Shown here in pieces: positions 1,668 through 63,875 of a stretch of 64,000 nt of DNA. Within the stretch, counting starts at the first letter, position 1, and each line of letters opens with the position of its first letter. Source of the stretch: Scyliorhinus canicula (Eukaryota); NCBI RefSeq assembly GCF_902713615.1, contig NC_052168.1, positions 5,704,001-5,768,000 of the forward strand. Direction: 5' to 3'. The position numbers and the translations under genes are program-made. The notes under the pieces are model-generated. The model had not been told where the DNA came from. It saw nothing but the letters and a program-made list of their open reading frames with translations, and did not search any database.

Positions 1668-3643
1668 TCAATGTAGGGTGAGCTTGTCAAACAGGTACTC
1701 TCCTGTGCCATTCACAGGGGCTCCCAGTCTCTTCAGGTTGGTGATGTGATCTCCGAGCTTCTTGATCATCTTCACTTGTTCATCCAAGTAGTGAGACTCC
1801 AGGAAGTCACAGAGCTGGAACAAGAGTTAGTAGCATTATTAGTGTGGACCTGGACAGGTATTGGGAGCAGACGTCAGCAATTTAGCCCTTTTGAACCCGT
1901 TCCGCCATTTCATCAGATCATGGTCGATGCCAAATCCACCTCCCCACCCTTTTATCAGAAATAAATCTACCCCTTTCTTGAAACCATTTAAATGATTCAG
2001 ATTCCACCGCACTATGGGGTAGTGAGTTCCACAAATTCACCAGCCTCTGCAAGGGGTAGTTCCTCCTTCCGTTTCTTTTTAAAAAAAAATGAAAACTTAT
2101 CCCCACCTTTTAAGCCAAACTTGAGGCACGTGGGCGAATTACCCACAAGAGGCACTTCACACAATTGTATTAAACTGGAGTGAAGGAACATATTGCCACC
2201 TCAGAATTAAAGAGTGATCCAGGTTCAGTGTAGGTGATCCTTTGCTTAAAACAGAACAAGTCCTCAAGTGTGAAACAAATCTATGAAGTTCTGCTACAGG
2301 GTGAATTGCAGATTACAATATCAGCTCCAACATCACGTGAGAAAGAGTTTACAGAACTCACATGAGGGTCAGTGTTCCCAGAGGAGAGTTTGTGCAGATC
2401 CAGCAGACTCTGGTTCACATTCTTCTCCATCTGCAGAGCTCTCTGCATTGCCTCCAGACCATTGCTCCACTCATCCTGCTCTGGTTTCTGAAAAAAGGTT
2501 ATGGAGAAGGTTTTACTGCAAAACTGAGAAATTTAAAGACTGCAACAACCTCAATAAAAAGGTTCCTATCTAAAGCATTGGGTTCTAATCGAGTAGATGA
2601 GAGGGGACAGCAGGATCTCAAATGAACCTCAACTCCACTATCTCCAAGTTCATGGGTCAAAGATACTTAATCTCACTGGAGAAAATGGGATGTGGGAGTC
2701 ACTGGCTGGGCCAGCATCTATTGGGCTATTCCCAATACCAAGTAATCAAAGTTGCATTTCAGAAGACTCCAGGTTAAAATCCAACCTTGACATCCTCCAG
2801 GATGATGCGGCCTCCACGTTTATTCTGGAATTCCATCAGTTTCTCAGCGTGTTCCCGTTCCTCATGTGACTGCTCCTTGAAGAACTCAGCAAAGTGACGC
2901 AGAGCAAGATCATCCCGGTCAAAGTAAGAGGACTGCAGGTAGAGACAGTGGGAGAGAGGCAGGTCAGACCCCAATCTATCAGACTCACCTCACACGTCCC
3001 TGACCTCAATGCTGGCCACTAATTAGGGGGCCTGAAACTAAATTGTTTTATCAATGCTTTTCCTCAGTATGTTCTAACCAATCCCTGTGGATGGTGGGAG
3101 GAAACCCACAGTCACCAAAAGTCAGAATTAAACCCGGGATCCTGCCGATGTGAGGCAGCAGTGCTAACCACTGTGCCAAGTAATAATGCTTTTTGGATTG
3201 AAGTTTGTGGACCAAAATGAATTACAGCCTTTCTCACACCAATGGTGGAAAATAGAAAATCCTTCAAATTCAGTATACCAGCCAGCCAATTACATTTAAT
3301 TGCTCCTCTTCAATTGGAAAAGAGAGGTTTAGGTATCTTCAAACTAATCCTTCTACCAGAAACGTCATAGAATCCAGGAGTGAAAAAAGGGACAAACTCC
3401 TATCTGAAGTGTTTAATCTATTCAGTCTGGGGAGGGAATATATCTAAAGCCAACTCATTAACCTAGGGAAACTACCTGCTCAGAAAGAAACATAGCCACT
3501 GGCTTAAATTGAAAACAGGCCTCCCAAAATACAAAACTCACCATGGAGAGGTAAACATAGGAGGAATAGAGCTCCAGGTTGATCTGCTTGTTAACAGCAT
3601 CCTCACAGTCCTTGTGGTAGTTCTGACGCACCTGGGAAGCCAT
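1668..3643 (-). CDS. Ferritin heavy-type subunit, copy 1 (173 aa, 4 exons)
   Basis: Exons 3643-3542, 2932-2786, 2487-2362, 1814-1668, all GT-AG, phase 0. Protein [26 protein letters not shown]...[13 protein letters not shown]...LFDKLTLH*. Ferroxidase ligands E24,Y31,E58,E59,H62,E104,Q138 present. AATAAA on minus strand at 1607-1612. Confidence 0.96.
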
Positions 3644-3705
3644 CTTACTGGTTAATGGCCCAAGTCAAACAGCAACAACATGAGCTTGGTCCTCACAAGC
3701 TCTTG

Positions 3706-3855
3706 TATTTATACAACTGGGACATCCGGCATTCAACCAGGGAATGACATCACCAATGATGATTGACAATCTCTGATAGCCAATCAGGAAATTGCCATGA
3801 ATCCAGGCACCAATTAATCAATGAGAGGGGGTTGGGTGTGACACTCAGAGCCAAT
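3706..3855 (-). promoter_or_regulatory. Core promoter of ferritin copy 1
   Basis: TATAAATA at 3713-3706; TGACATCA CRE/AP-1-like box; four CCAAT boxes at 3753, 3780, 3810, 3851; TGATAG GATA motif abutting the second CCAAT; CACACCC box. Same layout in the other copies. Confidence 0.8.
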
Positions 3856-61486: not shown

Positions 61487-63362
61487 GTCAATGTTGTGTG
61501 TTAGATGATTCATTTTATGGTCAACTTTCAATGTGGCTGAAGGCTCTCGGGAGAGATGTCACCGATGGCACAGTTGACCCACCCGAAGAGAAAGTGTATC
61601 CGGGTATTTACACCGATTCTGGTGAAAAAGGATCCGAGATGCAGCGACTGTCCTGTGGTCAGAAAGGGCTTTGTCCAAACTGAGGGACATCACATGGTCA
61701 CTCAAATGGCCATCCAAGTGGGCACGAGAGACTTTGCTGAAGGTCTGGGTTACTGATGCTGAGGGAACTGCTGATTGATCCTTTCCACAGGAAACTCTTT
61801 GAATTCAATATCACAACCTGTAGGGAGTGGGGATGGGGATGGGGATGGGGATGAGAAGCTCAGAGTGGTGCAGAGAATAACAAACACTGACAGTGACCAG
61901 AAATTGTGAGTGATGCTGAGACAGGAACATGGAATGACTGAAACACCATGGTTTCCTCGAATTCCCTTTATTATTGTGTTGTGGCTTCACACATCCTCAA
62001 TTTTAAGAAGCCCTCCTGGTGTGCAGCATATTCAGCCCCTCCACTGCCCATTCCGTTGCTGCATTCTCACACCACTTACTGGTAGTTGACTGAAAATTCA
62101 TTATAGACAGTGCAGATCTCAACAATGTTCCTGAAACTAGTTTATAAACATGGATAACTGCAGGAGTGGCATCAATGTTGAATCCACTCCGAGTGCTCTT
62201 TCCAAGGACTGTGCAGACTGGATGGGCCGAATGGCCTCCTCTGCACTGTAGGGATTCTTTCTATTTATAGGGGCAAAGGAGACAAATAATGGCCCACTGG
62301 GATGAATATTATCGGTTATGAAATGCTTGATGCCCAAACCTAAACAAATACTTATTTTGGAGATGGGTTAGGGGAAATTAATGGAAGGTGTTTGTTAAGT
62401 CACATTTATAGGATGTGACTGGTCTTTGGCTGGATCACGGAGGGAGAATTCAGAGGGCAACTCAAGTACATCTTTTAGTACACGTGGGTGGAAAATCCAC
62501 ACAGACACTGGGAGATTGTGCAGACGTAGACAGACTTACACCAGGAACCAACCAAGGTCCCTGGTGCTGTGAAGTAACAATGTTAACTACTATGCTAACA
62601 TGTCACCCTTTGAAATGGTAGCAGTCGTGGATTTAGAGAGCATTGTCTAAGTAATCTTGGTGAGGTACTGCAGTGCATCTTGTAAATGGTACAGATGGCT
62701 ACTACTGTGCATCAGTGGAGGAGTGTTTGAATGTTTGTAGAAGGGGGAAGTAACCAAGCAGGCCTGCTTGTCTTGGATGGTGTTGAGCTTCTGAGTGTTG
62801 TTGGAGCTGCGCTCATCCAGGCAAGTGGAGAGTATTCCATCACACTCAATTTGTCAGTGAAGCAGCTTTGGGAGGGGGTGAGGATGTGGATTCTCACCTT
62901 AGGATTCCTAGCCTTTGAGCTGCTCTGGTAGCCACAGTATTAATGTGGCTAGTCCAGTTTCTGATCAAGTGGTAACCCCCAGGATATTGACTGATTCGTA
63001 ATCACACCCTGCTCAGTGCTAAATCATTCAGACCATCAAACTGCACTGAAATATTAAAAAAAACAGTGCTATGTGAACCCATTCATGGTTGAGATGTGGA
63101 GTGTACATGGAAATTAAACCTTCACCATGATCATGAAGAATGATGCTCAGACATCACATAGCTTGTATGTAACTGGGTGCAATATGAACTATGTCAGGAA
63201 ATAAAGGGGATTTCAAGTTTACAAGGAGGCAAAATAGTCATTTATTTACAGTTATGATGCTACAAGACCAGGTCCCGATTGCAACAAGACATGAGAGAAT
63301 TTGGTTTTTGCCTTCAATAATCTGGTTCCACCAAACAGAACAAGATTGTTCCCACTGTCAGT

Positions 63363-63875
63363 TCAGTCACTGTCCCCCAGGGTGAGCTTGTCAAACAGGT
63401 ACTCTCCCGTGCCATTCTCAGGGGCTCCCAGTCTCTTCAGGTTGGTGATGTGATCTCCGAGCTTCTTGATCATCTTCACTTGTTCATCCAAGTAGTGAGT
63501 CTCCAGGAAGTCACAAAGCTGAAAAGAGACAAAACAACATTTCATGTCCAGCAGCAGGCAGAGGATTGTGGGAGCTTCCCTCCAGACAGACGTCAATGTT
63601 ATTCTACCCCTGGAAACTAGGGCAATACCCATCTCACCCAGCCCTTCCCATCAGCAGAAGCAAAGCCATGAGGTTTGGAGAGCCTCCAAATAGTTTCAAG
63701 ACCTACAAGGTTAGGAACTCCAATATACCCCCAGAAATAAAGAACTCACATGAGGGTCAGTGTTCCCAGAGGAGAGTTTGTGCAGATCCAGCAGACTCTG
63801 GTTCACATTCTTCTCCATCTGCAGAGCTCTCTGCATTGCCTCCAGACCATTGCTCCACTCATCCTGCTCTGGTTT
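63363..63875 (-). CDS. Ferritin heavy-type subunit, copy 10 (partial: exons 3-4; 5' part beyond window)
   Basis: Exon 3 63875-63750 and exon 4 63518-63363 intact; ends TLGDSD*; polyA signal 63241-63246. Confidence 0.93.

Follow-up and report, generated by a model that had tools for sequence, protein, structure and literature searches.

The iron-responsive element (IRE) located in the 5′ untranslated region (UTR) is the textbook device of translational control and, to our knowledge, is regarded as universal for the mRNAs of vertebrate cytosolic ferritins, the known exceptions being the retrogenes FTMT and FTHL17. Canonical vertebrate and many invertebrate ferritins possess this element. FTMT and FTHL17, two mammalian ferritin H paralogues without IRE and with germline-biased expression, are both intronless; the former carries a mitochondrial presequence and the latter has no ferroxidase activity. 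The ferritin genes dealt with here form a tandem array in the catshark Scyliorhinus canicula, of which a stretch of 64 kb was analysed (contig NC_052168.1, positions 5,704,001 to 5,768,000; hereafter “the window”); unlike the two retrogenes they retain three introns and all ferroxidase ligands and have no presequence. It is our opinion that these genes probably constitute a transcriptionally driven, IRE-less, oocyte-type H-ferritin array that escapes the control of the iron regulatory proteins (IRPs), with a separate canonical gene remaining IRP-controlled.

The closest described system is that of the Greenland shark (Somniosus), whose genome was found to contain 155 FTL and 179 FTH1 copies, ~80% of which reside in three clusters syntenic with those of the great white shark, the duplications going back 250 million years or more and the largest cluster being expressed tissue-specifically in the ovary (bioRxiv 10.1101/2024.09.09.611499). 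Like the catshark array, these clusters are tandem, consist of full-length ferritin H-like genes, are ancient and are common to several shark lineages. On the other hand, this preprint concerns another species and another array slice, deals neither with promoter conservation nor with exon-limited homogenisation nor with the split from the canonical IRE-bearing gene, and the words “iron” and “IRE” are absent from its text. A search of the literature found no paper on an IRE-less shark ferritin. Thus, ferritin amplification in sharks and its ovarian expression have already been reported, whereas IRE loss seems to be new; the additions to the known amplification are this loss, a deeply conserved promoter and a maintenance limited to the exons.

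Female-reproductive ferritins without IRE, accompanied by an IRE-bearing soma ferritin, are found in molluscs and schistosomes (Lymnaea, Biomphalaria, Schistosoma). In snails, the yolk ferritins lack the IRE that the soma ferritins have (PMC10799875), and the schistosome ferritin mRNAs, one of which encodes a female-specific yolk ferritin, are likewise described as IRE-less (cited in PMC1488847). The shark array shares with these paralogues the IRE-less feature only; in fact, the snail yolk ferritins are secreted and have a signal peptide and a 42-amino-acid insertion, whereas the shark array proteins have neither, and the two types of ferritin are of independent origin. A tandem duplication of heavy-chain-like genes for which, as in the case of the sharks, a dosage benefit is proposed occurs in the hadal snailfish, where 14 fthl27 copies are highly expressed in most tissues and are linked to tolerance of reactive oxygen species (PMC10746142); their number is an order of magnitude below that of the shark array and their expression is broad.

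Gene finding in the window (~45% GC, no N runs) by tblastn with the four exon peptides of copy 1, followed by splice-aware modelling, yielded nine complete four-exon ferritin genes, all on the minus strand and composed of the same four pieces in the same order, with ATG positions at 3643, 9762, 15900, 22125, 32396, 38390, 46086, 52808 and 59475. The “at least ten” genes of the original prediction thus amount to nine complete copies and a partial tenth, the latter being represented by exons 3 and 4 only at the right-hand edge, with its 5′ part outside the window. The integrity of the genes is directly apparent: all 27 introns are of the GT..AG type and in phase 0, no internal stop is present in any of the nine copies, each of which has the four coding exons and three introns of the vertebrate ferritin gene, the Kozak context is invariably strong (A/G at −3, G at +4) and an AATAAA signal is found 56–118 nt beyond each stop. 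The products are 173 amino acids (aa) long in copies 1–5 (C-terminus ..LTLH or ..LTLD) and 176 aa long in copies 6–9 (..LTLGDSD).

Exon 2 alone matches the Pfam Ferritin profile (PF00210) with 43.9 bits against a cut-off of 24.5, and the remaining exons match neighbouring parts of the profile. For the comparison with the human protein and for the phylogenetic tree, database proteins 93–95% identical to the window copies were used as proxies. A catshark protein with 95% identity to the latter aligns with human ferritin H chains over residues 2–174 (E=1e-84), the scores of the PDB matches being nearly level for human H (285 bits) and bullfrog M (271–273 bits). With the register given by this proxy alignment, the seven ferroxidase ligands E27, Y34, E61, E62, H65, E107 and Q141 (human H numbering) are kept in all nine copies, as are the three-fold-channel residues D131/E134, in keeping with the ferroxidase competence that had been attributed to the copies from their sequence. 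The array proteins begin at residue 4–5 of human H, their first ten residues corresponding to 5–14 of the mature human chain, so that there is neither an FTMT-like mitochondrial presequence nor, relative to human H, a signal peptide, N-terminal extension or insertion. The mean pairwise ratio of non-synonymous to synonymous divergence (dN/dS) among the nine copies is 0.19. Taken at the sequence level, these data support the view that the array genes are intact, selectively maintained, ferroxidase-competent H-type ferritins.

A block of ~235 nt upstream of each ATG can be aligned in all nine copies and contains several inverted CCAAT boxes, the TGATGTCAT motif and the TATA box TATAAATA, a further named component being the TGATGTCA motif. 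The Y-box-like inverted CCAAT box CTGATTGGCT occurs 12 times in the window versus 0.21 expected occurrences, and the 14-mer TATAAATACAAGAG exactly nine times, once before each ATG, versus 0.03 expected by chance. The distance between the end of TATAAATA and the ATG is 49–67 nt across the nine complete copies, precisely as had been predicted. Conservation between copies ends ~12 nt past the TATA box, the leaders beyond this point varying by substitutions and indels. Since most copies have the sequence TCAGTTC, a good initiator consensus, ~32 nt downstream of the TATA box's first T, the 5′ leader would be ~25–45 nt long, as judged from promoter anatomy, which would be too short for an IRE, and, in view of the adjacent TATA box, the 5′ UTR would lie wholly inside exon 1. 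Three genes of a 22.5-kb whale shark locus (L003) are likewise preceded by this block, again with TATAAATACAAGAG, and the leader layout is alike in a contig (L006) of the bamboo shark Chiloscyllium punctatum.

No IRE was found in this setting. Rfam gave zero IRE matches in the window, both at the gathering threshold and when IRE_I and IRE_II were searched on both strands at E≤10. A SIREs-like motif scan that required a C bulge, a 5-bp upper stem, a CAG[A/T/G]GN loop and a lower stem returned no candidate among the 657 loop-like CAG[A/T/G]GN strings of the window; the CAGTG strings of the copy 5 leader (at −8) and of the copy 6 leader (at −21) have no IRE context around them. Folding of the segments between TATA box and ATG revealed no structure in excess of that of shuffled sequences (z from −0.35 to +0.59), and an alternative leader structure was discarded in view of these z-scores near zero. 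Also the whale shark array locus has no IRE match at E≤10. Both procedures detect the positive control: the ferritin heavy chain-like gene of the little skate (L001) and its Logan transcript (L002) have an IRE_I of 42.6 bits located 93 nt before the ATG, which is also recovered by the SIREs-like scan and whose region folds with z=−2.78. Thus, the original statement that no C-bulged CAGUGN stem is present in the leaders is borne out.

A separate IRE-bearing ferritin, for which a search elsewhere in the genome had been proposed as a check, is found in cartilaginous fish, namely in the skate gene and transcript and in a shark-type transcript. In the latter (L004, a transcript-like contig) a consensus IRE is present at the 5′ end (42 bits by Rfam) and the encoded protein is 93% identical to the canonical catshark ferritin H; a second contig (L005) starts within the same IRE. 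The latter is an 866-nt contig of an assembly labelled Aeromonas veronii (GCA_012029535.1, JAAQQN010000094.1) that encodes a shark-type canonical ferritin H with a partial IRE and is evidently host cDNA contaminating a bacterial assembly. Cartilaginous fish therefore have the IRE in their canonical ferritin H, a shark-type transcript included, and the array is devoid of it. The canonical protein (XP_055519267 in little skate, XP_038639494 in catshark) has the same fold, seven ferroxidase ligands, four exons and cytosolic N-terminus as the array members, with which it shares ~72–75% identity; however, in its gene a perfect IRE is located ~90 nt ahead of the ATG, in a leader of at least 118–141 nt, whereas the array, present in many copies and belonging to a separate clade, has a TATA box 49–67 nt before the ATG and no IRE. 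Because canonical vertebrate and many invertebrate ferritins have the element, parsimony suggests that the IRE was lost in the array lineage.

A protein search made with exon 2, which was embedded in an open frame of intron plus exon to render full-length proteins eligible, returned 1139 proteins. The best matches are RefSeq models of Scyliorhinus, Chiloscyllium, Stegostoma, Hemiscyllium, Rhincodon, Carcharodon, Cetorhinus, Mustelus, Heterodontus, Pristiophorus and Heptranchias, named by similarity “ferritin heavy chain A/B-like”, “higher subunit-like” or “oocyte isoform-like”. Array-type RefSeq members are spread over no fewer than six shark orders (Hexanchiformes, Pristiophoriformes, Heterodontiformes, Orectolobiformes, Lamniformes and Carcharhiniformes). 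Among the clusters that these proteins form at 90% identity, several comprise 127–180 members each; no skate or chimaera protein of array type is found among the best 120 of the 1139. The window copies are 94–95% identical to a Scyliorhinus canicula member, 85–93% to those of other orders and 72–75% to canonical chondrichthyan ferritin H. In a tree of 58 proteins, which left out bullfrog M, teleost M/fthl27, human L and FTMT, the array proteins form a single, shark-only clade with a support of 100 in the Shimodaira–Hasegawa-like approximate likelihood ratio test (SH-aLRT), the window copies being nested beside the Scyliorhinus canicula member. This clade is set apart from that of the canonical chondrichthyan proteins (SH-aLRT 100), which holds the IRE-bearing skate gene; the tetrapod clade has a support of 94 and the branching order of the three clades is unresolved. 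Inside the array clade the proteins group by species or order, the 173- and 176-aa forms of one species falling together.

The copies of the window belong to several subgroups: copy 1; copies 2 and 3 with copy 4; copy 5; copy 6; and copies 7–9. Between subgroups blastn aligns no intron and no 3′ flank, while the promoter block aligns at 76–93% and the coding synonymous difference is only ~6%. Copies 2 and 3 are mosaics in which promoter and intron 1 align with copy 1 (87–97%) and introns 2–3 and the 3′ flank align with copy 4 (70–78%) and not with copy 1, a pattern that places a recombination junction around exon 2 and directly attests to recombination among the units. At synonymous sites the divergence amounts to 0.06 inside the window and to 0.14–0.16 versus the whale shark; in the latter comparison the aligned parts are the block of promoter and exon 1, the remaining exons together with some adjoining bases and a small number of intergenic blocks, and intron 2 cannot be aligned past the splice signals. 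For this same reason an attempt to establish, via the introns, the cross-species orthology of paralogue subtypes was abandoned. The grouping by species, these divergences and the mosaics point to concerted evolution or to birth-and-death turnover, with exons under strong constraint. Exons and promoter are thus the maintained parts of the repeat unit and their maintenance in the face of unalignable introns is what is expected if transcription starts at the conserved promoter. In the whale shark locus, exon 3 of one gene is interrupted by an in-frame stop and in another gene a fragment of exon 4 is duplicated (5656-7867; 16959-19268); the former is probably a pseudogene, and the two indicate that the arrays include decaying members.

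In the functional reading that we favour, the 64 kb of the window would be part of a far larger tandem array spread across sharks, each unit being presumably self-contained and consisting of a CCAAT/Y-box and TATA promoter, a short unstructured leader, four exons and a poly(A) signal. As the IRE would have been lost from the leader, the array mRNAs should be beyond the reach of repression by IRP1/2, and output would be set by promoter activity and gene number and not by the labile iron pool; that the protein is “made independently of cellular iron”, as originally put, is deduced from the absent IRE. The canonical, IRE-controlled ferritin H persists as a separate gene in cartilaginous fish. Given the published ovary-specific expression of the shark clusters and the IRE-less nature of the array, the most likely role would be that of an oocyte-type family which, beside a somatic-type single gene, furnishes the very large, yolky oocyte with ferritin in bulk; among the tissues listed as candidates by the original prediction, oocyte/yolk is the one agreeing with the ovary-specific cluster of the Somniosus data (bioRxiv 10.1101/2024.09.09.611499). 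It is also plausible that loss of the IRE would keep an abundant ferritin mRNA from titrating the IRPs. Finally, coding exons and promoter would be kept alike by purifying selection and probably also by gene conversion over short tracts or by unequal crossing-over, with introns and spacers left to diverge.

Several points weigh against this reading. Exact-protein look-ups with five array proteins returned genome records only and no Logan transcript contig, so that the start site, the length of the leader and expression are deduced from the genomic sequence. The statement concerning the ovary comes from a preprint on another shark, Somniosus, and the cluster in question may or may not correspond to this array. 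The absence of an IRE is compatible with a control by iron exerted through transcription or an unrecognised element, and the RefSeq collection has several accessions per identical protein that could hide alternative 5′ exons. No cytoplasmic polyadenylation element (CPE), a typical hallmark of stored maternal mRNAs, was found in the 3′ UTRs of the array. An upstream ATG is present within the TATA-to-ATG segment of copies 1–4 (e.g., 3644-3705, 22126-22176), which is relevant only if transcription starts upstream of it, near the TATA box; in copies 1–3 this ATG opens a 9-codon upstream open reading frame that ends 10 nt ahead of the main ATG. Lastly, copies 6 and 8 display an excess of non-synonymous changes relative to the other copies and may be decaying.

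Of the alternatives, the one that survives best, albeit unlikely, is that the array is expressed and IRE-less but has a somatic bulk role, be it erythroid, in liver/spleen iron storage or in protection from oxidative stress, with a transcription perhaps inducible by iron or stress. The lack of a CPE in the 3′ UTRs would fit this role, as would the teleost precedent of a tandem ferritin expansion with high expression in most tissues and a protective effect against reactive oxygen species (PMC10746142); however, the sole statement on expression of the shark clusters is that of ovary specificity (bioRxiv 10.1101/2024.09.09.611499), and dogfish liver ferritin could be the product of the canonical gene.

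It is very improbable, instead, that the array is mostly a non-functional amplification, whose similarity stems from unequal crossing-over and gene conversion, with few or no copies expressed and a missing IRE of no physiological meaning. Concerted evolution is evident from the clustering of the copies by species and from the mosaic copies 2 and 3, decay is seen in the whale shark copies with the in-frame stop and the duplicated exon-4 fragment, dN is raised in copies 6 and 8 and LINE (long interspersed nuclear element) fragments occupy the spacers; nevertheless, no damage is seen in any of the nine reading frames, the 27 introns, the nine Kozak sites or the nine poly(A) signals, dN/dS is as low as 0.19, the proteins are 85–95% identical between shark orders, the promoter is conserved where introns are not, and expression of a cluster in the ovary is reported (bioRxiv 10.1101/2024.09.09.611499). 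Finally, the idea that the genes are still IRP-regulated, because transcription starts upstream of the TATA box or because a distant, non-coding, IRE-bearing first exon is joined to an AG shortly ahead of the ATG, is hardly tenable, for although such an AG lies 4–25 nt before several ATGs (e.g., AACCAG/TAAGATG in copies 1–3) and one whale shark RefSeq model reaches >10 kb upstream of the gene, neither strand of the window or of the 22.5-kb whale shark locus holds an IRE at E≤10, as against 42 bits for the controls, the putative acceptors lack conservation from copy to copy and have no pyrimidine tract, the TATA/CCAAT block directly adjoins exon 1 in three species, and the long whale shark model, whose product length is unchanged at 176 aa, most likely joins the exon 1 of an upstream copy that is likewise IRE-less.

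An intron-containing, ferroxidase-competent H lineage, present in hundreds of copies across sharks, appears to have dropped the control by the IRE, which the canonical gene has kept, thereby offering a natural experiment on the purpose of IRP control, and a possible explanation for the iron provisioning of, or iron protection in, very large yolky eggs. The array would also represent a clean example of sequence maintenance limited to exons and promoter in an old tandem array. The value of these considerations is tempered by the previous reports of amplification and ovarian expression and by the fact that the functional consequences are inferred. More tentatively, and with reservations that make us regard it as possible rather than probable, sharks may have a dual ferritin system resembling the 5S rRNA genes of Xenopus with their oocyte and somatic types, in which one canonical, IRP-controlled somatic gene is complemented by an oocyte array of several hundred copies that shed the IRE partly to spare the IRPs; in this system the Y-box/CCAAT-TATA promoter would have been conserved since the orectolobiform–carcharhiniform (whale shark–catshark) split and the array would be held uniform by gene conversion confined to exons and promoter. 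In that case, no vertebrate ferritin H lineage of the intron-containing, cytosolic kind would have been constitutively free of IRP control before this one.

As to the individual units, all on the minus strand, copy 1 (1668..3643; 173 aa) has exons at 3643-3542, 2932-2786, 2487-2362 and 1814-1668 and an AATAAA 56 nt past the stop; its promoter and leader (3644..3878) contain CTGATTGGCT twice, TGATGTCAT and, at 3713-3706, TATAAATA, the TATA box ending 62 nt from the ATG. Both mosaic genes encode 173 aa: copy 2 (7760..9762) has exons at 9762-9661, 9024-8878, 8306-8181 and 7906-7760 and is preceded by a promoter and leader at 9763..9997 with TATAAATA at 9832-9825, while copy 3 (13896..15900) has exons at 15900-15799, 15163-15017, 14442-14317 and 14042-13896 and the upstream region at 15901..16135, with TATAAATA at 15970-15963. 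Copy 4 (20106..22125; exons 22125-22024, 21408-21262, 20655-20530 and 20252-20106) encodes 173 aa with the replacement D39G and has the most diverged promoter and leader (22126..22360; TATAAATA 22184-22177), with 70–76% identity to the others. The last of the 173-aa genes is copy 5 (30703..32396; exons 32396-32295, 31381-31235, 31064-30939 and 30849-30703), whose promoter and leader occupy 32397..32631 (TATAAATA 32458-32451).

Of the 176-aa genes, copy 6 (35906..38390; exons 38390-38289, 36731-36585, 36426-36301 and 36061-35906; promoter and leader 38391..38625, TATAAATA 38464-38457) encodes the most diverged protein, with R6C, M34I, E50D, R60W, S118A and C127S. Copy 7 (43314..46086; exons 46086-45985, 44788-44642, 43826-43701 and 43469-43314) has the shortest leader, the TATA box ending 49 nt from the ATG (46087..46321; TATAAATA 46143-46136). 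The product of copy 8 (50011..52808; exons 52808-52707, 51485-51339, 50523-50398 and 50166-50011), downstream of a promoter and leader at 52809..53043 (TATAAATA 52865-52858), has the replacements R6H, A49V, R60Q and E89K. Copy 9 (56670..59475; exons 59475-59374, 58180-58034, 57182-57057 and 56825-56670) has the longest leader, with 67 nt between the end of the TATA box and the ATG (59476..59710; TATAAATA 59550-59543). The partial copy 10 (63363..63875) was identified by tblastn and consists of exon 3 (63875-63750) and exon 4 (63518 to about 63363). R60W of copy 6 and R60Q of copy 8 correspond to R63 of human H, situated between the ferroxidase ligands E62 and H65, and M34I of copy 6 affects the final codon of exon 1; these two copies account for most of the amino-acid replacements, which may reflect relaxed constraint or subfunctionalisation. 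In copies 7–9 a long tract with a 15/44-nt period, rich in C on the gene strand and in G on the plus strand, lies directly upstream of the promoter block (46259-46354 in copy 7).

Two non-coding blocks (~200 and ~290 nt, 68–74% identical) occur once per gene upstream of copies 5–9 (32717-32909, 33027-33280, 38734-38925, 39043-39332, 46487-46683, 48188-48479, 53172-53363, 54860-55113, 59839-60031 and 61540-61830) and of the whale shark array genes (1333-1470, 9139-9425 and 20836-21035 of the L003 locus); neither block has an Rfam match, and the two may represent candidate enhancers or else ancient portions of the repeat unit. The large non-ferritin open reading frames of the spacers were rejected as genes, as they are LINE reverse-transcriptase fragments or have no Pfam match. 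LINE-type fragments with RVT_1 and zf-RVT matches lie at 22841-23743, 47097-47555, 53784-54242 and 60449-60907 on the plus strand and at 25083-26158 on the minus strand, and such material makes up most of the 8.5 kb that separate copies 4 and 5. In the neighbourhood of the canonical ferritin H, finally, both skate (L001 11842-14664) and catshark have a ferritin of 216–222 aa encoded on the opposite strand, 3–4 kb downstream.

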